Shown piece by piece: positions 1,011 through 62,731 of a DNA stretch of 64,000 bases. Position 1 is the stretch's first letter; each line of letters opens with the position of its first letter. Position numbers and translations under genes: made by a program. The stretch lies in the sequence record PV740454.1; one strand, written 5' to 3'. A model generated the notes under the pieces. That model made no database searches. It saw only the letters and a program-made list of their open reading frames with translations, and was not told the DNA's origin.

Positions 1011-1307
1011 ATGACACAACGTTACTCTTTTGAAGAAATTCTTGGCGAAGACTACGAAGAAAAAGATTATCTTGACTTTCTATTGGATGGTTATGGTGAT
1101 TATGGCGACGCGAAATTAGTAGACCAAGACGGTGGTGGTGAAGGCGGCTCAGAATACTGTTACTCAATTATTGAGAAAGGCGGTCGATTCTTCAAGACTG
1201 AATACAGCTACTACAGCTACCATGGTTACGACAACTACGGGGATCACTTCGTCGAAGTTTACCCAAAGCAAGTTACAATCACGCAGTACGTGAGCACTCC
1301 TCAGTAA
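1011..1307 (+). CDS. Hypothetical Tyr/acidic-rich phage protein
   Basis: 98 aa ORF abutting both neighbours. Confidence 0.65.
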   Translation: MTQRYSFEEILGEDYEEKDYLDFLLDGYGDYGDAKLVDQDGGGEGGSEYCYSIIEKGGRFFKTEYSYYSYHGYDNYGDHFVEVYPKQVTITQYVSTPQ

Positions 1308-2068
1308 TGCGTATTGTTGTCGGGTCAACTGCGTTGCATCATAATGGAATTCGACTGCGTAAGACCATTAAAGATCTAGATGTATTCGTAGACTCTCCCG
1401 ACTCGGCTAACGATGGGGATGATTTCATTGTCATTCCCGTTGAAATCTTGCAGATGTTCGACGGTGAGATAGCAACTGCTGACGAAGTTTACACGATTAA
1501 GTGCAGTCATCTTGGTTGGGATGAGCATAAAGTCGGGTATAGTCAGTTTGGTGGGTCAACATTGTGGGACAAGCATAAGCGTGATGTTATCGCGCTATCA
1601 AGATTCTGCAAGATTAAGCCTGAGCTATACGCAGCGTTGACCAATCACTGGCGAAGTGAACTTGGAAATAAAGATTATCTGTCATTGAACAAAGATGCAG
1701 ATGATTTCTTTAATGACAAGGTTCGATACGTGTACGATCACGATGAACTACATCGAATGGTTGCTGCGCCAAATCGCCCGTTGTATGAGAAAATTCTCAA
1801 AGACGAATGTGATGTATTCGTCAGTAAAGAAAAGTTCGAACAGTTGTCATTCGAAGACAAAATCAATTTGTTTCACGAAGAAATTACGGTTATTGCTATT
1901 GAGCGTTACATCGTTCATGGTATGATGCCGTTGAATGCGTGGAATCATGCGTTGAAGAAGACAATTACGAGACTTACCAAGAACTGGGCATGTGATTTCA
2001 TTTGTGCAAACATGAGTCATTACATCAAGCCGAAATACAATTTGAATATTTTAGAAGAAAAGGGTTGA
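1307..2068 (+). CDS. Putative Pol-beta-like nucleotidyltransferase
   Basis: N-terminal VVGSTAL...KDLDVF (GS...DxD motif). Confidence 0.6.
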   Translation: MRIVVGSTALHHNGIRLRKTIKDLDVFVDSPDSANDGDDFIVIPVEILQMFDGEIATADEVYTIKCSHLGWDEHKVGYSQFGGSTLWDKHKRDVIALSRFCKIKPELYAALTNHWRSELGNKDYLSLNKDADDFFNDKVRYVYDHDELHRMVAAPNRPLYEKILKDECDVFVSKEKFEQLSFEDKINLFHEEITVIAIERYIVHGMMPLNAWNHALKKTITRLTKNWACDFICANMSHYIKPKYNLNILEEKG

Positions 2069-2138
2069 CAGATGTCAGCCCTTTTTTGTATTATAGCTTT
2101 ATCGAAACGACATCGACTAACAAAGAGAGAACATTATG
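2062..2138 (+). promoter_or_regulatory. Terminator-promoter cassette with conserved leader (copy 1)
   Basis: GGGTTGACA-gat-GTCAGCCC-T6 hairpin contains -35 TTGACA (2065); -10 TATTAT (2089); leader ATCGAAACGACATCGACTAACAAAGAGAGAACATTATG. Confidence 0.85.
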
Positions 2139-2462
2139 AATGACTTAACTAAATTCGACATCAGATTTTCTGAAATCAAAGTTGTTTACTCTGATGCAGA
2201 TCATCAGAAAGTAGCAATGCGTATCGAAGATGGTACAATTATGTTGCATGAAGTTTTGTTCATGGATGCGAAAGGTTCATGTTGTGAAACTCGTAAACTT
2301 TGGAGCACTAAAGTTGAAAAGAAATGTGCATGGCCAGGTTACGAATCAGCTCAATTAGTTGATAAAATCAAAGCAGCAGGTAAAGTGTCACTTCGTCACT
2401 GGCGTGCTGCATCTAAAGCAGATTACGAACTATTTCGTTTAACAGAAGCATTCGAGGGTTAA
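2136..2462 (+). CDS. Hypothetical early protein
   Basis: Directly behind promoter cassette and GAGAG RBS. Confidence 0.75.
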   Translation: MNDLTKFDIRFSEIKVVYSDADHQKVAMRIEDGTIMLHEVLFMDAKGSCCETRKLWSTKVEKKCAWPGYESAQLVDKIKAAGKVSLRHWRAASKADYELFRLTEAFEG

Positions 2463-2464
2463 TC

Positions 2465-2869
2465 ATGTCTGAAGTTTACCAAATGTGGGAAAAGAAAATC
2501 GAACGTCTTGGCGAAATGCACAAGAAAATCTATGACATGGGTCAGCTTGCTGCTGGTGACGAAGGCAAGTATATTTTCAAAACTGAAATGAAGCGTGAGC
2601 ATCTATCACGCGAGATTTCGCATGATATTGACCACAAAGGTATAGACTTGCACCATCTTATGTACAAAGGTTTGTACGAGACAGCACGCGAATATCAAGG
2701 TGCAATCATGATTTTCTGTAAAGAAATGCCGTTGAAACAGCGTCGAGAACTGTTCGACAAGATTCGCGCCGTGTTTAACATTGATGCTTATACAGACGAA
2801 GCATGGGAAAAGGTACTCAAGCAGTTCAAAGGTTCATTGGTAGATCAGGGATTCATGTCAGGAGAATAA
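2465..2869 (+). CDS. Hypothetical protein
   Basis: 134 aa ORF in operon. Confidence 0.7.
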   Translation: MSEVYQMWEKKIERLGEMHKKIYDMGQLAAGDEGKYIFKTEMKREHLSREISHDIDHKGIDLHHLMYKGLYETAREYQGAIMIFCKEMPLKQRRELFDKIRAVFNIDAYTDEAWEKVLKQFKGSLVDQGFMSGE

Positions 2870-2871
2870 TT

Positions 2872-3579
2872 ATGAGCAGTTATCGTGTAAAGAAAGAAGA
2901 GTGTCAGAAACGTGGTATCGCGTTCAATTTCACTGAAGAGCAATGGAAAACATTACAAAACATGAAAAATGGTGGTCGTTGTGCATACACGAATCATCCA
3001 TTCAAGTCAGGCTGTGTGAAAATGCGTGCGACTGTTGAGCGAATCGACGAGTCAATGCCATATGAACCGACGAACTGTGTTCTTGTGACTCAACTTGCGA
3101 ACAATGTAAAGTGCAAATACATCGAGCAGAATCAGCCAATCAGCAGTGCAACACCAGAACAAGCGCACACACTGAAAACGATTAAGAAATTTCTTTCTGA
3201 CAGCAAGCGTGTTAAGCGAGTCGTTCAATCATATGTTGACAAGTACAAAGGGTTGGTTATTGAAACACCGACGAGTGATTTAGACATCACTAAACTATAC
3301 GTGAAATATGCGACTGAAGCACAGCGCAAAGGTAAGCACTTTGAAATCACGATAGGCGACTTCAAACGCACTGTATCGCGTAAACAGTGTCAAGTCAGTA
3401 AAGTACTACTGCCTAGCATCAAACAGCGCGTAGTGCGCGTTATAGACGATTCTAAGCCTATTACACGTGATAACATTCAAGTAACGTCGCAGCAAATCGA
3501 CGAAATCATGACTTCTATTGAAGAATTAGACATGACACCAGCGCAGAAACGCGCATTGATGAAGAACTTGGGGGCATAA
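2872..3579 (+). CDS. srd: T4 Srd-like protein
   Basis: KRGIAFNFT...CAYTNHPF...TVERIDESMPYEPTNCV resembles T4 Srd (KRRSKDFNL...CAYSGEPF...SLERFD); second degenerate repeat RKGKHFEIT; start after GGAG RBS. Confidence 0.6.
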   Translation: MSSYRVKKEECQKRGIAFNFTEEQWKTLQNMKNGGRCAYTNHPFKSGCVKMRATVERIDESMPYEPTNCVLVTQLANNVKCKYIEQNQPISSATPEQAHTLKTIKKFLSDSKRVKRVVQSYVDKYKGLVIETPTSDLDITKLYVKYATEAQRKGKHFEITIGDFKRTVSRKQCQVSKVLLPSIKQRVVRVIDDSKPITRDNIQVTSQQIDEIMTSIEELDMTPAQKRALMKNLGA

Positions 3580-3580
3580 T

Positions 3581-3835
3581 ATGGCTAAATTAGTAGAAGT
3601 TTACTCAACACCTGCAAAGAAAGTTAATATCGCTGGTGTCGATCTTGTTGTAGAGAATCGATTCAATTACGTGACTATCGACCAATCAGGTGCTGTATGG
3701 GCTTATGAAGATTCTCCTATTCTTTGCAACGATGGTGATGGGGCGTATTGGGATGCTTGGTCTGGTGAGACTGATGGTATTGCGCAATTCAGTGATGTGA
3801 CTGAAGAAGAGTTCACTAAATTATACGAGGTGTAA
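3581..3835 (+). CDS. Small hypothetical protein, paralog 1
   Basis: YVTIDQSGAVWAYEDSP motif shared with next ORF. Confidence 0.7.
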   Translation: MAKLVEVYSTPAKKVNIAGVDLVVENRFNYVTIDQSGAVWAYEDSPILCNDGDGAYWDAWSGETDGIAQFSDVTEEEFTKLYEV

Positions 3836-3836
3836 T

Positions 3837-4097
3837 GTGAGTAAATTATTAACAATGCACAAGGGTTGCATGACAGTTGTGATGGTTAGTGGTGTTCCAA
3901 TAGTCGTTGATCATGAAACTGAATACGTAACTGTAGACCGAAACGGTTATGTCACTGGGTGGACTGATCGACCATACTTCGACGAAGAAGAACAGACGTG
4001 GTCGTGTTTTGAGCTTTACGGTGAAGAGTGGCATTTAGCAACAATCTCAAATCCAACAAAAGAAGCAGTCGAAACGCTAATCGAGGTGTATGAATGA
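3837..4097 (+). CDS. Small hypothetical protein, paralog 2
   Basis: YVTVDRNGYVTGWTDRP motif. Confidence 0.7.
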   Translation: MSKLLTMHKGCMTVVMVSGVPIVVDHETEYVTVDRNGYVTGWTDRPYFDEEEQTWSCFELYGEEWHLATISNPTKEAVETLIEVYE

Positions 4098-4462
4098 ATA
4101 ATATCATGCAAGAGCTTGCTAGGGAATATCGCAAATCTGATAAGCATAAGAAAGATCTACACTGTGACATCTTTCTAATCCCTTGTGACAAAGATGGTGA
4201 CATTGAATCGAAATACATCAAAGAAACACTGCTTGAGGTGTATGACGAAATCAGGCGTTTCACTGGTCTTAGTCACGATGAAGTCAAAGAATGGTTTAAA
4301 GAACAGCCGTGCGATACGTGGTTTGGTAAGAAAATCACACATGAAGAAAAAGTTTATCTTTCGTTTTACGTGCGATACGATATACCTAAGAGTATGTTAA
4401 AGACATACGACATGAACAATTGGACTCAGGGTCCATCATTCAAAAATAAGGAAGTAACTTGA
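4094..4462 (+). CDS. Hypothetical protein
   Basis: ATGA overlap; 122 aa. Confidence 0.65.
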   Translation: MNNIMQELAREYRKSDKHKKDLHCDIFLIPCDKDGDIESKYIKETLLEVYDEIRRFTGLSHDEVKEWFKEQPCDTWFGKKITHEEKVYLSFYVRYDIPKSMLKTYDMNNWTQGPSFKNKEVT

Positions 4463-5220
4463 GAATTTTCATTTTTAGCGGTGCTGGTCTTGATGCAGAA
4501 TCAGGCATCAGCACGTTTCGTGATGCAAATGGTTTGTGGGAAAATCACGACATTATGCAAGTGTGTAATATCAACACATTCCGTGATAACTACGAGCTGA
4601 CACACAAGTTTTACAATCAGCGTCGTAAGCAATTAGCAGATGTACACCCGAATTCGGCGCACTTCAAAATCGCTGAGCTTTGCGAGAAGTACGACGTTGA
4701 TAACTACACTGCAAACGTATCTGACCTACTTGAGCGTGCGGGTTGTAAAGACGTGAAGCACATTCACGGTGAACTGACTAAAATCGAGTTGGATTACGCT
4801 AAACGTGATGGTAAAACAATCGACGTTGGTTACAGTGAGTTTGAACTGCGTGAAGGTCATTACGACAAACCAGCAGTTGTGTTCTTCAATGAAGGCGCAC
4901 CGATGTATACTGAATTCTGGGGTGCAATTGACACTTTATTGCCGACTGATATCGCGATTGTTGTTGGCTCGACACTTGAGATCAACCCAATTCATTGGGA
5001 TTTAGGTACGACTGGTTGTAAATTTATCTTAATCAACCCGACTGGTATTGATACTGAAAAACATTCTGCGTTGAACGAAGCAATTCGCATGTGTGACGTA
5101 TTCATCAACAAGCCAGCAACTGAGGCGTTCGATGAAATTGATAAGCACATTGAAGAACATATTTCTGTTCATTTTCCACATGGTCTCCCTGATCGCGGGA
5201 GCAATCGGGATAATTGTTAG
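4459..5220 (+). CDS. Sir2/CobB-family NAD-dependent deacylase
   Basis: IFSGAGLDAESGISTFRDANGLW, HPNSAH, TANVSDLLERAG, HIHGEL, VVGSTL. Confidence 0.92.
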   Translation: MRIFIFSGAGLDAESGISTFRDANGLWENHDIMQVCNINTFRDNYELTHKFYNQRRKQLADVHPNSAHFKIAELCEKYDVDNYTANVSDLLERAGCKDVKHIHGELTKIELDYAKRDGKTIDVGYSEFELREGHYDKPAVVFFNEGAPMYTEFWGAIDTLLPTDIAIVVGSTLEINPIHWDLGTTGCKFILINPTGIDTEKHSALNEAIRMCDVFINKPATEAFDEIDKHIEEHISVHFPHGLPDRGSNRDNC

Positions 5221-7879: not shown

Positions 7880-8266
7880 ATGTTTGACGCTGCTAGTGTT
7901 CGCGGTAATTATCACAGGAAGCAAAGTCCAGAACATCAAAAAGAAATCAACGAACTGCAAGATTTTTTGTTTAACACGTTGATGACTATTGATAAGATAT
8001 CTAAAACAGAGCTTGAAACTAATTTTGGTGTTCCTGCGAAATTTTATGAAATAGTTGTTGACGAGTTAGAGAATTTAGGTTATCATGTTAGAGCAGTGCA
8101 AGATACGTATCATTTAGATAACATGCTTGACTTGCGAAAACCATCAAAATTCGAATACATCACGTACAAATCACACGAAGACGCAGTAAGACACGTCAAT
8201 AGTGTTCTTCGTGCCGGTGACAATACTCGAATGATACTAACACGAATATCTTGGAGACGAGCATGA
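7880..8266 (+). CDS. Hypothetical protein
   Basis: GAGAG RBS; 128 aa. Confidence 0.65.
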   Translation: MFDAASVRGNYHRKQSPEHQKEINELQDFLFNTLMTIDKISKTELETNFGVPAKFYEIVVDELENLGYHVRAVQDTYHLDNMLDLRKPSKFEYITYKSHEDAVRHVNSVLRAGDNTRMILTRISWRRA

Positions 8267-9801: not shown

Positions 9802-10314
9802 ATGACAGAACCAAAACTGTACAAAGGCGTAAAAGAAAAAGATCTACCTGTTTACACCTCGCGTGAATTTGGCTACAAATACATCTACAAAGATTATGAA
9901 GGTGGTTGGGTTCCTGAGTGGGCAAGAACTTACGTTCGCTATGAGAAATGGCTGACGATGCGCTTAGCAGTCGGATTTTACATTTCTAGCGAGGCAAACC
10001 GCATCATTCGTCTGATGCGTACTGGTGAGCGCCTAGCACGTCACAAAGGCAACTACGTGTTTCGTTACACGCCAGTTCCACACACTGGTGGTCGCAAACA
10101 ATGGGTTTCAGCTAATCGCGGAAAAGGCTTGATGTCTCAGATTCACCACGATCAAATGTGTGTTGATGAGATTGAAACAGAATACGGCAAAGTGGTACGT
10201 AAAAAGCGTGCTCTTACCGTTCGTCGTCTTCGCGATTGGGATGGGCTTACTCATTACGACGCGCCTCAGCGTAGTTGGAAACGCTCTAAAAAGCGTAAGC
10301 AGTGGATGAAATAA
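9802..10314 (+). CDS. Hypothetical basic protein
   Basis: GGAG RBS; Arg/Lys-rich C-terminus RSWKRSKKRKQW. Confidence 0.7.
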   Translation: MTEPKLYKGVKEKDLPVYTSREFGYKYIYKDYEGGWVPEWARTYVRYEKWLTMRLAVGFYISSEANRIIRLMRTGERLARHKGNYVFRYTPVPHTGGRKQWVSANRGKGLMSQIHHDQMCVDEIETEYGKVVRKKRALTVRRLRDWDGLTHYDAPQRSWKRSKKRKQWMK

Positions 10315-13044: not shown

Positions 13045-13052
13045 TATAAATA
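13045..13052 (+). promoter_or_regulatory. T4-type late promoter
   Basis: Exact TATAAATA 24 nt upstream of ORF 13076. Confidence 0.8.
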
Positions 13053-13075: not shown

Positions 13076-13963
13076 ATGATTATTTTTGAACATCACGACT
13101 CGCTTGTTGAAGCTTTTACTACACCTGCTCCGTATCGTTGGGCAGATGATAATAATATTGTGTTCAGAGTCGGGTCAACGAATTACCAGGCTAATATCAA
13201 CTCATACGAGAACAGAAACACGCAGAGTCGAAATATAGACGTGTCATTTCAATGGCAGACTGAAAGCGGTAGATGGACGTTCACATTGAAAAAAGGTGAC
13301 AATCCGAAAGACGCACTTACAGTGATCAGTACAATTCTAGCTGCTACATTTGAAAAGGAAGCGAAAGAGAAGCCAGATACGATTTCGTTTAGTGCGTTCA
13401 CCGATGACAATGATAGAGACGCACAGAAGCGTTTCAAACTTTACAAACGAATTGCTGAGCGTTATGCAAAAGAGCGTAATTACACACTACAAGTTCATGA
13501 TCGTTCTTTTCTTCTAACTAATAACGCGAAACCAAGTCAGATGAGAAGATTCCCGAACGACGGCGTTATTGAAGAAGACGGTCTTGTTTATGCTGAATTC
13601 CCGCGTGTCAATGCGTTCACATGGGCTAAAATGTTCTGGCTTGACAATGCAGGTGATTACATCGACTTGTCTCTACCACATGGTCGTGTTAAGGTGACTC
13701 GAACATCAGAAGATGTAGTCACTGTCGATGGGCGCAACGCAGAAGGCAAAATCGATAACTTAGATAGCTCTTATGTATGGCTGAGTATGCTTGGTGAGAT
13801 TAAAGTTCGTTCACGAACCGGTCGAGAATTCACATTGCCTGAAAGGGGTGTTATGCTTGACGCTGGTGACATGATTTTGTGTGACGATAAGACAATATAT
13901 TACTTGTCAGATGAAGAAATGTTCGGTGATATTTGGGGTTACGACATCGTAGAAATCGTATAA
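13076..13963 (+). CDS. Late protein, paralogous family member A (candidate internal/injected protein)
   Basis: Shares DALTV..T...ISFSAF.D..D.DA.KR..LYKR.AER with 50359 and 51282. Confidence 0.7.
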   Translation: MIIFEHHDSLVEAFTTPAPYRWADDNNIVFRVGSTNYQANINSYENRNTQSRNIDVSFQWQTESGRWTFTLKKGDNPKDALTVISTILAATFEKEAKEKPDTISFSAFTDDNDRDAQKRFKLYKRIAERYAKERNYTLQVHDRSFLLTNNAKPSQMRRFPNDGVIEEDGLVYAEFPRVNAFTWAKMFWLDNAGDYIDLSLPHGRVKVTRTSEDVVTVDGRNAEGKIDNLDSSYVWLSMLGEIKVRSRTGREFTLPERGVMLDAGDMILCDDKTIYYLSDEEMFGDIWGYDIVEIV

Positions 13964-13993: not shown

Positions 13994-15652
13994 TCATGGT
14001 ACTAGAGGACTACGCTCTTTAACCAATCGTTCTTCGTCAACCGTTGGTTCGGCTGCACGCATGAAGTCAGCGACTTCAGTTAGTTCATGAATTCGTTCTT
14101 GTCGTTTACGTTCAGAAAGAACACTGAATTTTTCATGTTTGTTCTTTTTCTTCAGTCTGATGACTGCATCGAATTCAGAAAGTTGAATCAGCTCAGCTTC
14201 AAACAATGTATTGCGATTGATGATGAATTCGCAATCACCTTTCTTCCCATGCTTACCTGTTGCAAGAATCGGCAAACCTTCAGCTTCGATAACAAACACA
14301 ACGTTCAATTTCTTATCAGATTCAATCATATCTCGCATTGACGATTTGCTATTTTTATCGATTGCATTCACGATAGTTTTCGATGATGATTCAACGAAGT
14401 TACATGCAACAATGGGGTTTGTGGATGATGAAATAAACGCAGTAGACGCGAATACCCCAGATTCAAGAATCGCACCGACTCGCTTGCTGCTCATTTCAGC
14501 ACCGCGATACAATGTCATTTCACTAGAAATCTTACCAGCTTCAGCAAACGCATGATCTAGACGTTTAATGATGTCTGATGCTTTATCAGATTCAACGCCA
14601 TGTACTAGTGCTTCGTTTACTTTCCACGCATATCTAGACGCCGAATAGCGAGAGATTGCAGCTTGTGTAAGTGCTCCAAGCCCAGCGAATGAATCTTCTT
14701 GCATCAATAGAATAGAAAGACGCTCATATTGCGCTTCAAGAGCACGAGAACGCGATTCAAGTAAGCAATTGAATACATCACTAGGGTTTTTAGATTCGTG
14801 TATGTACGAGTTTATAGAGTTAGCAAGAGCTGGTAGCTCAAGATTCATGTCAATCAATCCTTGTGCAGCCATTGCGATTTTTGACTCAGATTCGTTTAAT
14901 GCAATTTCAGTTAAACGCGCATTGTGTGATGTACTGTAATGTGATTCGAGTTGTGGCATTTGAAGAACCGCGTTCGGAACACGAGCAGCAGGATTATCGC
15001 CAACCCACGTATCGAGAACAACATCGTCATAGTCATCATATTCAGCACCAGCAGTAACGATGATTGTTTTCTTGCTTGAAATGTCAGTTTCTTGGGACAT
15101 TTTAGCAGCAATCATGTTTACCGTTTCTTCAGACGCTTCAAATAGCTTGTCAGCGTTGTAGCCTGGTTTTGTGATGACGAAGTAGCTGAAGTCATCAACC
15201 ATTTCAGATGAACCATCGTTGACGATTTTAGTCGTTTCACATCCGTAGCGTAGTTTTTTGAATAACGTTTTTACGCGCATATCAAACATTTTACCACTAC
15301 CTAGCTTTTGAATACGCATCGATACAACGTTAGCACGACGACCGAGCATGAATTCGTAAACAAGAGTTACAATAGTTTCAATTAGTTTTTGCTGGTCACC
15401 CATTTCACGAATGGTTAACCCGCCTTTCTTTCCGCGCATTGCAGAAACAGTACAGAACCAGCTACGTTTTCCACGATTGCCGATGTCTGATTTAGTTTTA
15501 GTAGTGAACGAAACAACGATGTCCCTAGCTTCGCCTTTCATATCGATCACAAAGAATTTGTTTTCTTTGGTCGAGCGAGCCGGATAGAAGTCGTATGTCG
15601 CGCTCATGTTTTCTGTTAATTGTTGATATCCAATCATTTTGTATAGACTCAC
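13994..15652 (-). CDS. alt: Alt-like ADP-ribosyltransferase (start may be the ATG at 15637)
   Basis: TLYRG, FISSS and DCEFII (R-S-E clade ART); N-terminus resembles T4 Alt; LTE cleavage-like site; CATAAATA on minus strand at 15671-15678. Confidence 0.75.
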   Translation of the reverse strand: MSLYKMIGYQQLTENMSATYDFYPARSTKENKFFVIDMKGEARDIVVSFTTKTKSDIGNRGKRSWFCTVSAMRGKKGGLTIREMGDQQKLIETIVTLVYEFMLGRRANVVSMRIQKLGSGKMFDMRVKTLFKKLRYGCETTKIVNDGSSEMVDDFSYFVITKPGYNADKLFEASEETVNMIAAKMSQETDISSKKTIIVTAGAEYDDYDDVVLDTWVGDNPAARVPNAVLQMPQLESHYSTSHNARLTEIALNESESKIAMAAQGLIDMNLELPALANSINSYIHESKNPSDVFNCLLESRSRALEAQYERLSILLMQEDSFAGLGALTQAAISRYSASRYAWKVNEALVHGVESDKASDIIKRLDHAFAEAGKISSEMTLYRGAEMSSKRVGAILESGVFASTAFISSSTNPIVACNFVESSSKTIVNAIDKNSKSSMRDMIESDKKLNVVFVIEAEGLPILATGKHGKKGDCEFIINRNTLFEAELIQLSEFDAVIRLKKKNKHEKFSVLSERKRQERIHELTEVADFMRAAEPTVDEERLVKERSPLVP

Positions 15653-17395: not shown

Positions 17396-17635
17396 ATGAT
17401 AACGATATACACAATTCCTAACTGCGACGGCTGTCGCCACGCTATTTCCCTCTGTAAGTTCAAAAACGTCCCGTACACTGTAATCGAGTTGCAGTCTCAA
17501 TCAGACATCGATAAATTGCATAAACGTCTTGGTGGTGTTCGCAATATACGAGTGCCATTAGCAATGCATGGAGATGACTACATTGGTCATTTACCAGAAT
17601 TGAAGAAATGGATCGATGCTAATCTGTATAAATAA
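17396..17635 (+). CDS. Glutaredoxin (NrdH/NrdC-like)
   Basis: ITIYTIPNCDGCRHA (CxxC); VP...YIG. Confidence 0.88.
   Translation: MITIYTIPNCDGCRHAISLCKFKNVPYTVIELQSQSDIDKLHKRLGGVRNIRVPLAMHGDDYIGHLPELKKWIDANLYK
17627..17634 (+). promoter_or_regulatory. T4-type late promoter for the capsid vertex gene
   Basis: Exact TATAAATA. Confidence 0.8.
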
Positions 17636-17692: not shown

Positions 17693-18586
17693 ATGACTGT
17701 ATCTACTAGTAACGGTTTACCAGACATTGTGACTGTTCAAAAACGTCTTTATCCGTTAATCTTTACGGAGATCGTTTCTGAGCAGGTAACAAAACAACCA
17801 GTAGCAACCGCTTACGGATTCAAAGCTGTATCTGAAGCTGACGACGGTAGTGGTTGGACTCAATTCGGATTCAGACTTGACCGTTGGTATACTGAAGTTA
17901 AATCTTCAAAAATGAAGACTGAAATCTCACTTGAAACAATTCAAGATCTGCAAGCTCTTGGTGTTAATACTAACATCATTGCTGGGTCATTAGCTGACCA
18001 AATTGCAGATGAGATCAATACTGACATCATCAATGCACTGAACGGCATTTCAACAGTTGGGACAGCTCTTGTACTTGCTGGCACAACAGACTTTGACAAA
18101 GGTCAAGATCTGTATGCTAAAGTTCACGTGTCTGCTGCTGAAATTGAAAAATCAACTGGATGTCAAGGCACTTATGTAGTTGCTGGCGGAAAATGCTTCG
18201 GTCTACTTACCGGATGTGGTGTTGTTAGGAAAATCAGCGATACTGTTTACCAGGCATGGTCTGGATTGTACATCGTACACGATAAATATGCAACGTCTGA
18301 TTATGTGACAGTTGGCGTTAAGAAAGAACTTGGTGATTATGAGATCTCAAGTATCGTATTCAGCCCATATGTCTTTGACAGCGAAAACGAAGGCGCAATT
18401 GCTTATCAATACAAGGGAACTGATCCAAAATCATTCCACTCTGTGTATGGTGTTATTTCACGATACGCACTGACAGTTGCTCCACTTGAAGAAACTCAAA
18501 CTGGCGCAGTGGAAATCGATTGGGACAACCTTGGCGCATTAGCGAACAGTTCTAAGCTGTCTTACACTCATGCAGTGACAGTATAA
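17693..18586 (+). CDS. 24: Capsid vertex protein, gp24-like (short form)
   Basis: gp23/24 family signatures (LIFTEIVSEQVTKQPVATAYG; LADQIADEINTDII; VVAGGK; SIVFSPY); late promoter upstream. Confidence 0.75.
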   Translation: MTVSTSNGLPDIVTVQKRLYPLIFTEIVSEQVTKQPVATAYGFKAVSEADDGSGWTQFGFRLDRWYTEVKSSKMKTEISLETIQDLQALGVNTNIIAGSLADQIADEINTDIINALNGISTVGTALVLAGTTDFDKGQDLYAKVHVSAAEIEKSTGCQGTYVVAGGKCFGLLTGCGVVRKISDTVYQAWSGLYIVHDKYATSDYVTVGVKKELGDYEISSIVFSPYVFDSENEGAIAYQYKGTDPKSFHSVYGVISRYALTVAPLEETQTGAVEIDWDNLGALANSSKLSYTHAVTV

Positions 18587-18594
18587 GGTGTGAC

Positions 18595-19110
18595 ATGAAA
18601 AATCATTATGTAGATAATAAAGCTCTATACGCATCGTTGTGCGAATGGAAAGAAGAAATGAAAACGGCACCTGAAGATGTTCATGTGCCTGTACCAGATT
18701 TTGTAGCTGAGAGTATTTTGAAAATCAGCGAAAATCTATCGAGACGTTACAACTTTAGCGGTTACACAGCAACGTGGAAAGAAGAAATGATTGGTGACGC
18801 AATCGAGCACTGTTTGCGTTACATCAAAAACTTTGACACTGAAAAATACAAAAATCCACACGCTTATATAACTCGAATCTGCTTTAACGCATTTGTTCAG
18901 CGTATCAAGAAAGAACGCCAAGACACTGCGATTAAATATAAAGTATTCTTATGCGATTCGTCTAACTATTCAATGGACGGTGAAGAAGCTGATTATGAGT
19001 TTCTTCAACAGATGCTGGAACGTGTCAACTCTTACGAAACGAGTAAGAAAGACAAGGCTCAACCAGACGAAAAGAACGAACCACTGAACTTACAAAAATT
19101 TTACAATTAA
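18595..19110 (+). CDS. 55: Late-transcription sigma factor
   Basis: HYVDNK...NFSGYTATWKEEMIGDA...NFDTEKYKNPHAYITRICFNAFVQRIKKE. Confidence 0.95.
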   Translation: MKNHYVDNKALYASLCEWKEEMKTAPEDVHVPVPDFVAESILKISENLSRRYNFSGYTATWKEEMIGDAIEHCLRYIKNFDTEKYKNPHAYITRICFNAFVQRIKKERQDTAIKYKVFLCDSSNYSMDGEEADYEFLQQMLERVNSYETSKKDKAQPDEKNEPLNLQKFYN

Positions 19111-19119
19111 GGAATTAAC

Positions 19120-20565
19120 ATGTTAGGTAACTTTGACTCATTTCTGAGTGAAAATCGCCGTCAAACTCAGGGTGGTAAAATCTACCCTAAGTTTGGTCAA
19201 GTTATTGTTGAGCTAGGCACTGCATCTACTGAGTTCAGCAACGGCAAAGGCGTTGAAACAACTATCGGCATGATGGAAAAGGCAAATGAGCTTAAATCTA
19301 TCATGGAACAAAAGCTATGTGAAGATCCAAACGTTAATCATAATATGTTTGACATGAATCTGAGTGAAAATGTAAGCACCGTCAACTTGCTTATGGAAAA
19401 CGAATTCCTAGCAATGCCAGCGCATTCACTACAGCAAGTTAAGTCGATGATCATGTGTACTGAAGCGCGCCTTCCGAGTCTTGTGATCAAAGGCGGCGAC
19501 TTGAATAAGGTTGTGACTGAAGCAACTAAGCTTGGGTACAAGCAAAAAGACATCCACGTTGTTATCCCAATGAACGAAATGAAAATCGTTCTTGCAGATT
19601 CGGATAAGTTGATCATCGAATCACTTTCATTTGATGATAAAACAGCGTCTGAAGTTCTTGCACAAGCTGCTCCGATCAATCTTGGTGACATTTACGTTAC
19701 AGTTGAAAACGTAGTAAGTGAAGCACAACTTTCAGAAATGAAAGAGATCAAGATCAAGACAGCGAATCGCGCAATGACTCTAGGGTCTCTTAATCGTCAT
19801 GTCATGGAGCACTTCGTTGTTAAAGAAGCGAAAGAAGTTTCATATGCGCGTGAAGTAGCAAAAGACACTGGTCTACCAATGCTAGAAGGGTTCAAAGCAT
19901 ACGACTTCAAGCGTAACGTCACTATGTTCGAACATGCACAAAACGTATTCACTAAAGAAATCGGACGTGCGCCGATGACTGCGACTGCATGGCAAAATCT
20001 AGTTGATGTTAAAGAAGCGTATTTCGACAACGGTTGGAAGCTAAAGCATAACAACACTAGCATTGTTCTTACAAATGCTCGTGACGCAATGCGTGCTAAT
20101 CGTGTGTGTGAAGAATATCGCGTTGAGCTATCAGAAGCTGGCTACCCACTTCTTGACATGGTAGCAATGATGGAACGCAAAGGCGTTAGACACTTCGATT
20201 GTCAGTCATTTGCTAAAGCAATGATGGAATTTGATGGTTGTGTTACACCAGAGCGTCAGACTGTGACTGCATTCGTTACTGAATCTGCCGCGAATCGTGT
20301 ATTCCACCCGCAATTTATGTCTAGTCTACGTCCAGTGACTGAAATGGTTGATAGTGTCGATGAGCTTGTACGCGCACTTGCAAATGACCAGTTCAGTGAA
20401 TTTCGTGTTTCTGAGTCGATTGCTGAGTCAATGCTAGATAAAGAAACTCTTTACAGCATGATGGAGAAAATCATCAGTGAAGGGGTTGACGTTAATATCG
20501 ATGGTAAGCTAGTTGAATTCACTGTTGCTGATACTAAATACAGCATTAAAGTTGATATTAAGTAA
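19120..20565 (+). CDS. Hypothetical 481-aa protein, candidate internal head protein
   Basis: MLGNFDSFLSE capsid-targeting-like N-terminus; KIYPKFGQVIV recalls a degenerate P-loop kinase start. Confidence 0.6.
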   Translation: MLGNFDSFLSENRRQTQGGKIYPKFGQVIVELGTASTEFSNGKGVETTIGMMEKANELKSIMEQKLCEDPNVNHNMFDMNLSENVSTVNLLMENEFLAMPAHSLQQVKSMIMCTEARLPSLVIKGGDLNKVVTEATKLGYKQKDIHVVIPMNEMKIVLADSDKLIIESLSFDDKTASEVLAQAAPINLGDIYVTVENVVSEAQLSEMKEIKIKTANRAMTLGSLNRHVMEHFVVKEAKEVSYAREVAKDTGLPMLEGFKAYDFKRNVTMFEHAQNVFTKEIGRAPMTATAWQNLVDVKEAYFDNGWKLKHNNTSIVLTNARDAMRANRVCEEYRVELSEAGYPLLDMVAMMERKGVRHFDCQSFAKAMMEFDGCVTPERQTVTAFVTESAANRVFHPQFMSSLRPVTEMVDSVDELVRALANDQFSEFRVSESIAESMLDKETLYSMMEKIISEGVDVNIDGKLVEFTVADTKYSIKVDIK

Positions 20566-20573
20566 GGTGTGGC

Positions 20574-21221
20574 ATGAAAAAATTCAATGCATTTTTGACT
20601 GAAGTTCAGAAATACAGCTCAGCGGCAACGTCTATCAAAGGTAAAGAAGTAGCAGCGTTAGTTAAATTGTTTAAGTCAGGCATGTTCGTGCCTGACGGAA
20701 CTGCACTTGACTACGGTGCGGGTAAATACGGTCGTAACGCTGAATTTTTGCGTTCTCAAGGTATTCGTACTTACGCATATGACAAGTTCAACGGTACGTC
20801 TGCTGACGGTTGGGATGCAGTTAGCTTGTCTGTACCTTCTGGTATGACATTCGACACTGGATTTACTTCATACGTTCTTAACGTTGTTCCAGAGTCTGTT
20901 GAAGCTGAAATCATTCGTGAAGTCGAGTCGTTAACAACTGGCAAAGTGTTCCACATCACTCGTGGTACTGACATTACACAAACTGTGTTCAATGTGATTT
21001 CTGGTAAATCTAAAAATGACGTGATGATGCAGTTCGTTGCTCAAGAATATCCAGAGATTTATGGTCAGATTGTCGCTAACGGCGGTACTAAAGAATTAGC
21101 TAAAGAAATTGCAACTCGTGGTGTTGTAACAGCTAAAGACAGCTTTCAACGTATTCCAGACTTATCAAAGTACGGTTACAGAAAGTCTGGTTCAGGCGCA
21201 TCTGTCGTGTGGACAAAATAA
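20574..21221 (+). CDS. Class I SAM-dependent methyltransferase with capsid-targeting-like N-terminus
   Basis: ALDYGAGKYG (motif I), AYD (II), FTSYVLNVV (IV); N-terminus MKKFNAFLTE. Confidence 0.8.
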   Translation: MKKFNAFLTEVQKYSSAATSIKGKEVAALVKLFKSGMFVPDGTALDYGAGKYGRNAEFLRSQGIRTYAYDKFNGTSADGWDAVSLSVPSGMTFDTGFTSYVLNVVPESVEAEIIREVESLTTGKVFHITRGTDITQTVFNVISGKSKNDVMMQFVAQEYPEIYGQIVANGGTKELAKEIATRGVVTAKDSFQRIPDLSKYGYRKSGSGASVVWTK

Positions 21222-21242
21222 TTTCGATTATTTTAAAGAAAA

Positions 21243-21318
21243 GGGTTGCTTCGGCAGCCCTTTTTTTGTATTATAGCTTTATCGAAACGACATCGACTAA
21301 CAAAGAGAGAACATTATG
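21243..21318 (+). promoter_or_regulatory. Terminator-promoter cassette with conserved leader (copy 2)
   Basis: GGGTTGC-TTCG-GCAGCCC-T7; TTGCTT(21246)-N17-TATTAT(21269); 52-bp leader identical to 2088..2139. Confidence 0.85.
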
Positions 21319-57642: not shown

Positions 57643-58250
57643 TGTGCGGTTTATTTGCTGCTAGAAGCAAGCAAGAGCTTATTGAATTATCAAAAAGCAA
57701 TCTACATCGTGGTTCGCGTACTCACTCTGTGAGTACGTTTAAAAACGGTCATGTGTCAGTGCATAAATTCACTGGTGCATTCGATCCAGTTAATGTTCCT
57801 GACAGTGCAGATTTCTATATCTGTCACGTACAAGCACCAACTGGAACTAGTGCGCAAGCACACCCAGCTATTGTAACAGTCGAAGAGAACGGTCAGTTAC
57901 ACGACTCACACGTGTGGCATAATGGTATTCTCAAAGATCATTACATGAAAAAGCAGACTCAAGATTGGGATACTGCACACATTGCTGAAGCTATTTGCTA
58001 TGGCAAATTGAATGAGCTTGACGGTACATTCGCGTGTTTTCACTTCATCAACGGCAATTTACGTGTGTTTCGTAATGAAATCAGCCCGTTGTTCATGAAC
58101 GAAGACGGTACAGCATTCAGTAGCACTAAGACGATTCTAACACCGTATCATGTTGATGCGAATAAAGTGTTTAATATCGACTTACGAACATTTAAACTAT
58201 CGGTAGTGAGTGAGTTCAAGACACTCGAAAATCCATATTTCTTTTTGTAA
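57642..58250 (+). CDS. Class II (Ntn) glutamine amidotransferase
   Basis: MCGLF (Cys2 nucleophile); HRG; CHVQAPT; HP; WHNGIL; GTFA; TAATG coupling to queC. Confidence 0.85.
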   Translation: MCGLFAARSKQELIELSKSNLHRGSRTHSVSTFKNGHVSVHKFTGAFDPVNVPDSADFYICHVQAPTGTSAQAHPAIVTVEENGQLHDSHVWHNGILKDHYMKKQTQDWDTAHIAEAICYGKLNELDGTFACFHFINGNLRVFRNEISPLFMNEDGTAFSSTKTILTPYHVDANKVFNIDLRTFKLSVVSEFKTLENPYFFL

Positions 58251-58259
58251 GGTAACATC

Positions 58260-58535
58260 ATGATTGAAGTGAACATCGACGACTTGCTGAAAAACGGCAA
58301 AGTCACATTTGAATTTGAAAAAGCAGATGGTTCTGTTAAGACTGTAACTGGTACTCGCAATCTTGACTTCATCCCTGCTGAGTTTCATCCGAAAGACAAG
58401 CCTTTAGCTGAAGGCGAAGCGCCGAAAGAAAAGACTGAAAAGCAGAAAGCTACTTGTGGCTACTTCGACTTAGAAGCTAACGGTTGGCGCTCGTTCAAGC
58501 GTGCTAATCTACGTGAAGTGAAATCGTTTGTATAA
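58260..58535 (+). CDS. WYL/SH3-like beta-barrel protein (DUF2693-like)
   Basis: VTFEFEKADGSVKTVTGT...YFDLEANGWRSFK. Confidence 0.75.
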   Translation: MIEVNIDDLLKNGKVTFEFEKADGSVKTVTGTRNLDFIPAEFHPKDKPLAEGEAPKEKTEKQKATCGYFDLEANGWRSFKRANLREVKSFV

Positions 58536-60662: not shown

Positions 60663-61646
60663 ATGAGCTTTGTGAAATACACATCATTAGAAAACAGCTA
60701 CCGTCAAGCATTCGTAGACAAATGTGATATGCTTGGCGTTCGTGATTGGGTCGCACTTGAGAAAATTCACGGTGCGAACTTCAGCTTCATCGTTGAATTC
60801 GACGGTGGGTACACTGTAACGCCCGCTAAGCGCACTTCTATCATCGGCGCTACTGCTACTGGAGATTACGACTTCTACGGCTGTACGAGCGTTGTAGAAG
60901 CTCACAAAGCGAAAGTAGAATCAGTCGCAAACTTCTTGTGGATGAATGAGCACATCAATTTGTATGAGCCGATCATCATCTATGGTGAGCTTGCAGGCAA
61001 AGGCATTCAGAAAGAAGTCAACTATGGTGATAAAGATTTCTGGGCGTTTGACATCTTCTTACCACAACGTGAAGAGTTCGTCGATTGGGATACGTGTGTT
61101 GCAGCATTCACAAACGCTGAGATCAAATACACGAAAGAACTTGGTCGTGGCACACTCGATGAGTTGCTTCGCATCGATCCCCTGTTTAAGAGCTTACACA
61201 CGCCCGCAGAGCACGAAGGCGATAACGTAGCAGAAGGGTTCGTTGTTAAGCAATTACACTCTGAGAAACGCTTACAGAGCGGTTCACGTGCGATTTTGAA
61301 AGTCAAGAACGAGAAGTTCAAAGAGAAGAAGAAGAAAGAAGGTAAAACTCCTACTAAACTCGTTCTAACTCCAGAACAAGAGAAGCTTCACGCTGAGTTT
61401 AGCTGCTACTTGACAGAAAACCGTTTGAAAAACGTACTAAGTAAGTTAGGTACTGTGAATCAGAAACAGTTTGGCATGATTAGCGGGCTATTTGTCAAAG
61501 ACGCCAAAGATGAGTTTGAGCGTGACGAACTCAACGAAGTAGCGATTGATCGTGACGATTGGAACGCAATCAGACGTTCATTAACGAATATCGCCAACGA
61601 AATCTTACGCAAGAATTGGTTGAATATTCTCGATGGGAACTTCTAA
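60663..61646 (+). CDS. rnlB: RNA ligase 2
   Basis: YTSLEN; EKIHGANFS; YGELAG; FDI; AEGFVVK; ILKVKNEKFKE. Confidence 0.96.
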   Translation: MSFVKYTSLENSYRQAFVDKCDMLGVRDWVALEKIHGANFSFIVEFDGGYTVTPAKRTSIIGATATGDYDFYGCTSVVEAHKAKVESVANFLWMNEHINLYEPIIIYGELAGKGIQKEVNYGDKDFWAFDIFLPQREEFVDWDTCVAAFTNAEIKYTKELGRGTLDELLRIDPLFKSLHTPAEHEGDNVAEGFVVKQLHSEKRLQSGSRAILKVKNEKFKEKKKKEGKTPTKLVLTPEQEKLHAEFSCYLTENRLKNVLSKLGTVNQKQFGMISGLFVKDAKDEFERDELNEVAIDRDDWNAIRRSLTNIANEILRKNWLNILDGNF

Positions 61647-61649
61647 CAA

Positions 61650-61844
61650 TTGAAAAAACGTGCTTGGTTCTTTGTTTTTTGTGGGATTGGGGCAATAAGC
61701 TACTTCGGTGGCTTATTTGTCGCGTCATTACTCATATTCGAATCCGTTGAAGCATCTATATTATTCATCATTCTAGTGTTTTTAGCTCTATTAAATACAG
61801 TCAGAGCAGGCATCGAAGATGATGAAAATAACAAAGCTCCTTAG
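61650..61844 (+). CDS. Hypothetical two-TM membrane protein
   Basis: Hydrophobic; TTG start. Confidence 0.45.
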   Translation: MKKRAWFFVFCGIGAISYFGGLFVASLLIFESVEASILFIILVFLALLNTVRAGIEDDENNKAP

Positions 61845-62422: not shown

Positions 62423-62731
62423 ATGAAAACATTCAATGAATTTTTAGCAGAAGCACAACACATGTATGAGCTACCACCTGGGTATGAAGTATTCGGTCTG
62501 GTGGATGTAGATGGGAAAGAGGTTGAACTGCACTCAGACGATGTGATGCGTGACGAATTAACAAAAATTGCAAACGCACGTAACGTAGCTATCGCAACTG
62601 GTGGTGTTTCTTCAGAAGAAGCAGGTGTATTGATCACTAAAGGCGGCAAAGAAATTGATTACTTCCCACATGAAGATAAAGCTAGTGGCCCACGCTTTAA
62701 AAACTTCGTGAAACGTCACTTCAAGGTCTAA
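62423..62731 (+). CDS. Probable internal head protein
   Basis: MKTFNEFLAE closely matches the T4 IP capsid-targeting sequence MKTYQEFIAE. Confidence 0.7.
   Translation: MKTFNEFLAEAQHMYELPPGYEVFGLVDVDGKEVELHSDDVMRDELTKIANARNVAIATGGVSSEEAGVLITKGGKEIDYFPHEDKASGPRFKNFVKRHFKV

Follow-up and report, generated by a model that had tools for sequence, protein, structure and literature searches.

The 64,000-nt stretch of sequence record PV740454.1 analysed here (hereafter the window) carries, on its plus strand at 20574-21221, a gene for a small putative S-adenosyl methionine (SAM)-dependent methyltransferase (MTase) whose first ten residues resemble the capsid-targeting sequence (CTS) of phage T4. 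A 3.5 kb portion of the window used as a query matched Vibrio phage CZ01 at 100% and phage nt-1 at 95% identity, both of them T4-like vibriophages of the KVP40 group in the genus Schizotequatrovirus. The MTase gene closes a row of genes transcribed in the same direction, and the following features were recognized at the locus:

17627-17634, plus strand: late promoter box TATAAATA, canonical T4-type, 66 nt 5' of gene 24; putative promoter
17693-18586, plus strand: capsid vertex protein of the gene 24 type, opening the unit (Pfam Gp23, 2e-45; PHROG 138; gp24 in the KVP40 annotation)
18595-19110, plus strand: gene 55, late sigma factor (PHROG 234 at 2e-60; KVP40 annotation)
19120-20565, plus strand: orf481 (KVP40.0065 orthologue, PHROG 14490), with a CTS-like leader, MLGNFDSFLSE; translationally coupled to the MTase gene
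20564-20569, plus strand: Shine-Dalgarno sequence AAGGTG of the MTase gene, read from the sequence, 4 nt 5' of the ATG
20574-21221, plus strand: MTase gene, 215 amino acids (aa), 23.4 kDa, pI 9.1 (KVP40.0066 orthologue; PHROG 14016)
21236-21267, plus strand: intrinsic terminator formed by a GC-rich hairpin and a subsequent T-run, located 15 nt past the MTase stop codon

The MTase open reading frame (ORF) is a real gene, because it is preceded by a Shine-Dalgarno sequence and has counterparts over its full length in 49 Vibrio phage records as well as 230 metagenomic homologues in a clustered protein collection. The 49 phage records, found by tblastn, are without exception of Vibrio phages, and KVP40.0066 shares an identity of 91% with the window ORF. 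Among the annotated records the product is called hypothetical in all but one, phage 1.081.O alone being annotated with a SAM-dependent methyltransferase.

Only three exact copies of TATAAATA occur in the 64 kb window, and in KVP40, 1.081.O, and 6E35.1a the box likewise precedes gene 24, by 62-67 nt; the copy at 17627 likely marks the start of a late transcription unit ending with the MTase gene. Genes 24, 55, orf481, and the MTase gene are spaced by just 8-9 nt, again as in these three phages, and the Shine-Dalgarno sequence of the MTase gene takes in the last two bases of the orf481 stop codon TAA (20563-20565). The terminator, also present in KVP40, 6E35.1a, and 1.081.O, folds as RNA into a hairpin of -19.7 kcal/mol (z = -5.1), a stability equalled by none of 200 shuffled sequences. 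In this conserved arrangement, which runs TATAAATA, 24, 55, orf481, MTase, and terminator, the MTase gene comes last in a unit headed by a capsid vertex gene, which would fit synthesis of the enzyme during head assembly.

A second sequence, ACTAAATA at 20533-20540, had been pointed out in the original prediction and lies shortly upstream of the MTase gene. It is found where it was reported, lies inside the coding sequence of orf481, occurs once per strand in the window, and reads differently at the corresponding site in KVP40, 6E35.1a, and 1.081.O; NNTAAATA occurs 19 times on the plus strand of the window. Being at chance level, within coding sequence, and unconserved, ACTAAATA provides no evidence for a late promoter and was rejected as one.

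The MTase protein was divided into a leader and a predicted mature enzyme, in which the following elements were placed:

20574-20603, plus strand: leader MKKFNAFLTE, residues 1-10, a CTS-like propeptide with a predicted prohead-protease cut after L8-T9-E10
20604-21218, plus strand: predicted mature enzyme, residues 11-215, 22.2 kDa, pI 8.9 (AlphaFold and Foldseek)
20628-20636, plus strand: T19-S20-I21 motif, opening the conserved domain, invariant in 54/54 aligned members
20709-20723, plus strand: motif I, D46-Y-G48-A-G50, glycine-rich SAM-binding loop (D46, G48, and G50 invariant in 54/54; aligns to motif I of TehB, 2xva)
20781-20783, plus strand: D70, the motif II acidic residue (invariant in 54/54; aligns to the TehB equivalent; end of beta-2 in the model)
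20868-20888, plus strand: S99-Y-V-L-N103-V-V105, end of strand beta-4 (N103 and V104 invariant; not (D/N/S)PP(Y/F/W))

By its own sequence, the MTase protein had no Pfam match at E<=0.01 and nothing significant in NCBIfam, PADLOC, or the PDB sequences, and PHROG 14016 has no assigned function. Its relatives are more informative. An exhaustive profile search collected about 200 representatives (50% identity clusters) at E<=1e-10, and 54 family members, down to about 35% identity, were aligned. Scanned singly at E<=0.01, 47 of these 54 relatives matched the Pfam family Methyltransf_23 (PF13489), and four fusion relatives exceeded its 27-bit cut-off. The alignment has 18 invariant columns, among them T19-S20-I21, D46, G48, G50, R54, D70, N103-V104, H127, R130, and Q192-R193. 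The strings DYGAG (46-50), AYD (68-70), and SYVLNVV (99-105), from which a methyltransferase had originally been predicted, are all in place, and the invariance of D46, G48, G50, D70, N103, and V104 across the family lifts them beyond chance resemblance.

An AlphaFold model built from the MTase alignment reached a mean predicted local distance difference test (pLDDT) value of 90.4 and a predicted template modelling (pTM) score of 0.86, residues 1-20 being less confident. In a Foldseek search of the PDB, 217 chains matched at E<=0.001, and all 50 of the matches listed are class I SAM methyltransferases or putative ones; none of them is a near match, the best TM-score being about 0.58 and identities 9-18%. 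A viral structure library added just an orthologue from VH1_2019 and generic AdoMet methyltransferases. The alternation of beta strands and alpha helices and the seven-stranded sheet of class I MTases were both found in the model and its structural matches, and the mature part appears to add to this fold a helical insertion and a C-terminal part specific to the family. Predicted strand 65-69 ends at D70; in class I enzymes the acidic residue of motif II, where beta-2 ends, binds the ribose hydroxyls of SAM, and the end of beta-4 is the usual seat of catalytic or substrate residues. In a profile search against the PDB sequences all matches were sub-threshold and covered the generic SAM-binding region, with TehB at E 0.13, and they were used solely for placing motifs I and II. 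Matches to flaviviral NS5 cap-methyltransferases (E 0.29 or worse) extend up to and include motif I and were taken as generic SAM-site similarity without significance. Judged from the model and the conserved residues, the MTase protein has the fold of a class I SAM methyltransferase, in agreement with the original prediction; its cofactor site is intact, and it represents a distinct, uncharacterized family. Fold and conservation suggest that it may be catalytically active.

The T4 CTS consists of the first ten residues of the internal protein IPIII, in which positions 4 and 7 serve targeting and positions 8 and 10 serve processing, and the T4 prohead protease gp21 cleaves after L/I-x-E (PMC9026906). 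The leader of both IPII and IPIII, read from NC_000866.4, is MKTYQEFIAE. The MTase leader has the same length and register, with F4 for Y4, F7 for F7, L8 for I8, and E10 for E10; four of the ten residues are identical, four more positions carry conservative changes, and the gp21-type motif L-x-E (L8-T9-E10) closes the leader. In the close orthologues, K2, F/Y7, L8, and E10 never change and position 4 holds F or L, whereas positions 3, 5, 6, and 9 vary freely; the leader is 54% identical vs 77% for the core. The leader residues have low pLDDT and stand outside the conserved domain. In the fusion proteins the profile match opens at positions 10-13, and of 206 stand-alone relatives at least 16 are leaderless and begin right at the conserved core.

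The N-terminus of each ORF was scored against the T4 IPIII leader (BLOSUM62, ungapped, offset 0-2 residues). As a positive control, this score put the three internal-protein genes of T4 in the top three among the 39 ORFs of their region. Three of the 101 window ORFs scored at least 18, against 0.25 expected by chance; the MTase ORF ranked third, and orf481, with a score of 15, came next. A distant clade of homologues, about 37-39% identical, carries leaders even closer to that of T4, e.g., MKSFSEFITE, and its members rank first by leader score on two contigs with T4-like content (SegE-type endonucleases, T4 RNase H, a DexA-like exonuclease, and Rnl2). On one of these contigs (L012) the MTase homologue is followed in rank by a 1149 aa protein at 1188-4637 on the plus strand, with a weak PARP-domain match and the leader MKDFQEILKE. 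Two homologues that lack a leader of this kind come from contigs without T4-like character, a small sample. On these grounds of sequence and rank, we argue that the MTase leader is a signal and not a coincidence, as its original description as capsid-targeting-like had proposed.

Particle data are available for the relative 6E35.1a, likewise a Schizotequatrovirus, in whose particles 94 proteins were detected by mass spectrometry (PMC12028318 Table S4). One of them, VP6E351A_0103, a 24 kDa 'hypothetical protein' with 31 and 79 counts in two replicates, corresponds in Table S8 to QZI87378.1, MYOV011v1_p0106, and PHROG 14016 (PMC12028318), and it is the MTase orthologue, 80% identical to the window protein. 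For comparison, the tail tube gave 47/58 counts and the 25 kDa baseplate wedge subunit 42/89, and evident cytoplasmic carry-over was represented by a dUTPase (7/10), a ligase (0/2), FolE (13/7), and a NAMPT-like protein (16/23) (PMC12028318). The counts of the MTase orthologue are therefore in the range of structural proteins and above every evident cytoplasmic enzyme listed. The orthologues of gp55 and orf481, which are co-transcribed with the MTase, are absent from the list of 94. The head maturation protease and scaffolding proteins that a gp21-type route requires are listed for 6E35.1a, their genes being outside the window, and the authors noted packaged FolE, Acb1, and NARP2 and left VP6E351A_0103 without comment (PMC12028318).

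The relation of leader to detection was examined in 100 annotated 6E35.1a genes syntenic with the window, with tags assigned via Table S8 anchors and molecular weights. Four genes stood out with leader scores of 18-21 vs a next-best score of 13, and three of these four were robustly detected vs 9 of the 100 overall. Leader score tracked detection (Mann-Whitney p = 0.0019; hypergeometric p about 0.002); the 'top four' cut was set after the score gap had been seen, and the Mann-Whitney test is free of the cut. A regular-expression definition of 'CTS-like' gave no significant association (Fisher p = 0.25) and, being too rigid, was replaced by the similarity score, which had been defined beforehand.

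Taken together, fold, leader, and particle data indicate that the MTase protein is likely a stand-alone class I SAM methyltransferase that travels as cargo of the T4-type internal-protein packaging system, and that it probably reaches the host together with the phage DNA. The MTase would be made from the late unit during prohead assembly, and its leader, through an aromatic or hydrophobic residue at position 4 together with F7, L8, and E10, would bind the scaffolding core and bring the protein into the prohead. A gp21-type protease would then cut after L8-T9-E10, and the mature enzyme of 205 aa and 22 kDa, mildly basic, would be kept in the head with the DNA and may exit with it upon infection. 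Once in the cytoplasm of the host, the enzyme could use host SAM to methylate its target before phage gene expression. The suggestion that the methyltransferase is carried inside the head, made at first from the sequence alone, is supported by the presence of its orthologue in the 6E35.1a particles.

Several observations weigh against this reading. The particle data come from 6E35.1a rather than CZ01, and they are counts, so that the predicted cleavage of the leader rests on sequence. Because those particles were purified by polyethylene glycol (PEG) precipitation only and included cytoplasmic enzymes at low counts, carry-over is possible. The leader of orf481 is equally good, yet its orthologue was undetected, so either a leader is insufficient or detection is incomplete. 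M-K-x amphipathic helices and [LI]-x-E are common, the latter being found near the N-terminus in about half of the MTase family and in 25 of the 101 window ORFs, and the leader resemblance may thus be partly generic. At the level of expression, a search of ten loci showed no late promoter immediately before the MTase gene, so that late expression needs a read-through of 2.9 kb, and in distant relatives terminator-like hairpins, not late promoters, are found just 5' of the MTase homologue. Since the window protein itself falls below every curated cut-off, its family assignment is transitive and structural. The substrate is also left without a clue by the fusion partners of the relatives, namely DUF5661 (twice), GNAT, and DUF5710, and by the neighbourhoods of the distant homologues, which have no conserved partner gene and served only to distinguish T4-like from other contexts.

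Part of this evidence would be expected if the protein were an ordinary cytoplasmic MTase, not specifically packaged, with an amphipathic helix for a leader and a proteomic signal arising from lysate carry-over. The PEG-only preparation with its listed dUTPase, FolE, and NAMPT-like protein, the frequency of [LI]-x-E near window N-termini, and the failure to detect the leader-bearing orf481 all fit such an explanation, as does the position of the MTase gene among early- or middle-type genes (55, 47, 46). It is nevertheless unlikely. Carry-over accounts poorly for 31/79 counts that surpass those of each evident cytoplasmic enzyme and reach the tail-tube and baseplate range, the more so as the co-transcribed gp55 and orf481 are not on the list. 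The leader similarity tracks detection with a p of about 0.002, the conserved leader positions coincide with those that are functional in the CTS, and homologues on T4-like contigs bear leaders whereas those on other contigs do not.

If the enzyme is packaged, its target becomes the next question. The original prediction had offered restriction evasion first, with the packaged enzyme methylating the incoming phage DNA ahead of the host restriction enzymes. The precedent is P1 DarB, a virion-head protein whose DNA adenine MTase domain protects in cis (PMC5512222, PMC9024508). The mild basicity of the mature protein (pI 8.9) would suit a DNA-binding enzyme, the invariant R54, H127, R130, and R193 could bind phosphates, and 31 of the 54 relatives are weakly similar to TIGR04096, a DNA-phosphorothioation-associated putative MTase and the most specific NCBIfam match. 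The sequence motifs of DNA MTases are, however, missing: neither the amino-MTase motif (D/N/S)PP(Y/F/W/H), in whose place L-N-V-V-P is read, nor the C5-MTase motif P-C-(Q/K) was found in any of 261 family proteins, and a DNA target is disfavoured for this reason. Membership in TIGR04096 was rejected, since the window protein scored 14.5 bits and nine relatives scanned singly scored no more than 27 bits against a cut-off of 150, with matches confined to model positions about 14-87 of 478, the SAM-binding part. Assignment as a TehB equivalog failed likewise (11-20 bits against cut-offs of 218-303), as only motifs I and II align. The 50 structural matches listed comprise small-molecule, protein, and tRNA enzymes and include no DNA MTase. 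A few tens of enzyme copies would moreover have to treat a 247 kb genome within seconds. In 6E35.1a DNA, liquid chromatography-mass spectrometry showed dPreQ1, and the word 'methyl' is absent from the main text of that paper (PMC12028318); the DNA of these phages is already protected by 7-deazaguanines. Methylation of phage DNA against restriction thus appears an improbable role for the packaged enzyme.

The possibility that the protein is packaged but non-catalytic, an MTase fold reused as a DNA-condensing or scaffold-associated head filler, draws on the T4 internal proteins, which are diverse in fold and have only the leader in common (PMC3012670), and on the mild basicity of the protein. 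We regard it as very unlikely, because the SAM-binding hallmarks are invariant down to 35% identity, including in non-packaged, leaderless, and fusion members, and such invariance across a diverse family argues for selection on catalysis. That the enzyme converts dPreQ1 to mdPreQ1 in phage DNA is scarcely credible: 7-deazaguanine DNA does occur in Schizotequatroviruses, with mdPreQ1 in phi-Grn1 and phi-ST2, but this reaction is carried out by DpdM, a DUF3109 metalloprotein rich in cysteine and of unique non-Rossmann fold, as validated for the VH7D homologue (PMC10516641), the gene is present in all 49 matching Vibrio phage records whatever their 7-deazaguanine type, and nt-1, whose protein is 97.7% identical, has dPreQ0 and dG+ rather than dPreQ1. 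A DpdM-like role was rejected on the protein side as well, as neither the MTase protein nor its relatives matched DUF3109 and the fold is different.

For the packaged methyltransferase, our best guess, drawn by analogy with T4 Alt, is a target that would be a host protein or RNA rather than DNA. It is conceivable, and held here only tentatively, that the CTS acts as a general exchangeable label for varied injected enzymes (MTase, ADP-ribosyltransferase, and others of unknown fold) in T4-like phages of marine bacteria and that the MTase is a takeover or counter-defence effector of the first minute of infection, methylating host protein or RNA with host SAM ahead of phage transcription.

Among known systems, the MTase resembles the T4 internal proteins IPI, IPII, and IPIII. 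The likeness extends to a ten-residue leader with an aromatic residue at 4, F7, L/I8, E10, and a gp21 motif at its end, to unrelated cargo proteins with only the leader in common, to a gene location within a variable part of a T4-like genome, and to the presence of the orthologue in particles. The mature part, on the other hand, is unrelated to the T4 internal proteins in sequence and fold. The T4 proteins are small and non-enzymatic or inhibitors, whereas the vibriophage protein has an enzyme fold, and its cleavage and ejection are predictions.

T4 Alt enters the head via an N-terminal propeptide, is processed by gp21, and is ejected with the DNA to modify the host machinery using a host cofactor (PMC9026906). 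It thus offers a parallel for an enzyme as head cargo, and the same window codes for an Alt-like protein whose orthologue is plentiful in 6E35.1a particles; on one distant T4-like contig, the MTase homologue and the PARP-domain protein bear similar leaders. Alt differs in transferring ADP-ribosyl from NAD, as opposed to methyl from SAM, and in its fold.

In phage P1, the MTase domain of DarB is packaged via an N-terminal signal and presumably enters the cell along with the DNA (PMC9024508, PMC5512222). DarB is a 250 kDa protein with an EcoKI/TaqI-type DNA adenine MTase fused to a helicase, whereas the vibriophage MTase is a 23 kDa stand-alone protein without a DNA amino-MTase motif. The DarB signal, of more than 9 and at most 30 residues, is unrelated, and packaging of DarB needs other Dar proteins; the vibriophage MTase uses a T4-type leader. 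The initial remark that a packaged methyltransferase is not known as a standard T4 feature holds for T4; P1, however, has a packaged DNA adenine MTase (PMC5512222).

With Methyltransf_23 and TehB-like class I MTases the protein shares the Rossmann-like fold, motif I, and the acidic residue of motif II, and it differs from them in the invariants of its own family (T19-S20-I21, R54, N103-V104, H127, R130, and Q192-R193) and in the helical insertion. For TIGR04096, the alignment covers only about 70 of the 478 positions of the model, and the neighbourhood showed no dnd genes. In the open-access papers and preprints searched, we found no previous account of a T4-type CTS on a small stand-alone class I MTase.

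Injected phage proteins act before phage gene expression and decide the first minute of infection. The known cargo of T4 comprises the restriction-enzyme inhibitor IPI*, the ADP-ribosyltransferase Alt, and two proteins of unknown role. The MTase is probably a new enzymatic cargo of this known packaging system; if so, a small SAM methyltransferase on the same tag would be new chemistry in the T4-type injected set, and injected methylation would be new chemistry among phage ejection proteins. CTS-like leaders were found in vibriophages and in uncultured T4-like phages on unrelated proteins, and the T4 CTS would then be conserved and functional far beyond coliphages. The analysis also provides an annotation at the level of function for a core Schizotequatrovirus gene, hypothetical in nearly all records, and it offers an interpretation for a protein that a published particle proteome lists without comment. 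With about 200 clusters and both packaged and non-packaged members, the family makes the substrate approachable by comparison.

Three further genes of the window bear on the packaging of proteins:

13994-15637, minus strand: Alt-like ADP-ribosyltransferase (PHROG 802 at 8.5e-85), with L-T-E at residues 7-9
40448-42112, plus strand: 554 aa protein (PHROG 13195), leader MKLFTEFYQE, score 20, rank 2/101, ending in Y-Q-E and not L/I-x-E
62423-62731, plus strand: 102 aa ORF with the leader MKTFNEFLAE, 7/10 identical to the T4 leader, score 35, rank 1/101, no PHROG

The 62423-62731 product, judged from its N-terminus, is a candidate small internal protein in the sense of the T4 internal proteins. 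The orthologue of the 40448-42112 product, VP6E351A_0134, was detected in 6E35.1a particles with 58/109 counts. The Alt-like orthologue VP6E351A_0095 (122/233 counts) is among the more abundant non-structural particle proteins, and the N-terminus of the Alt-like protein, apart from L-T-E, scores low against the T4 IPIII leader. In the 6E35.1a stretch compared, the top CTS score belongs to MYOV011v1_p0039 (3005-3598, minus strand), a 197 aa protein with the leader MKKFNEF... found in particles with 12/17 counts. The syntenic window site, 61646-61819, holds no counterpart, the gap from the RNA ligase gene to the following ORF being only 173 nt there. As with the internal proteins of T-even phages, the set of cargo genes with a leader seems to differ from one related phage to another.

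Among the genes that precede the MTase gene, the gene 24-like vertex protein has an orthologue in 6E35.1a particles with 90/145 counts and contains no L/I-x-E motif within its first 16 residues. It is only 297 aa long, its Pfam Gp23 match begins at model position 126, and the KVP40 annotation states that gp24 'may contain an internal deletion'. Homologues of orf481 were found only in Schizotequatrovirus-like phages (12 clusters). A role of orf481 as a DarB-like functional partner was considered and rejected, as profile searching was unhelpful and a model of pLDDT 70 gave no significant fold match; its matches to Dam-like folds (E 8e-3, TM 0.14) are too weak to count as evidence. The gene was flagged 'Defense?' by the ISME J authors.

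Upstream of the leader-bearing MTase genes of the two distant T4-like contigs, a GC-rich hairpin and T-run lie just 5' of the gene (L011, about 9910-10000; L012, about 8050-8129), reminiscent of the promoter/stem-loop modules that have reportedly been described for hyperplastic regions of T4-like genomes. By synteny with 6E35.1a, a 7-deazaguanine DNA-modification cluster (queD, folE, tgt-like, queF, and queC) is expected at about 53000-58300 on the plus strand of the window. The window also encodes three paralogues of PHROG 6387 (13076-13963, 50383-51279, and 51282-52118, plus strand), the first of which has an exact TATAAATA 31 nt upstream (13045-13052). The 6E35.1a members 0094 and 0154 of this group were found in particles, and in two of the window copies residues 10-14 read L-x-E and then A-F, suggestive of a common protease site.

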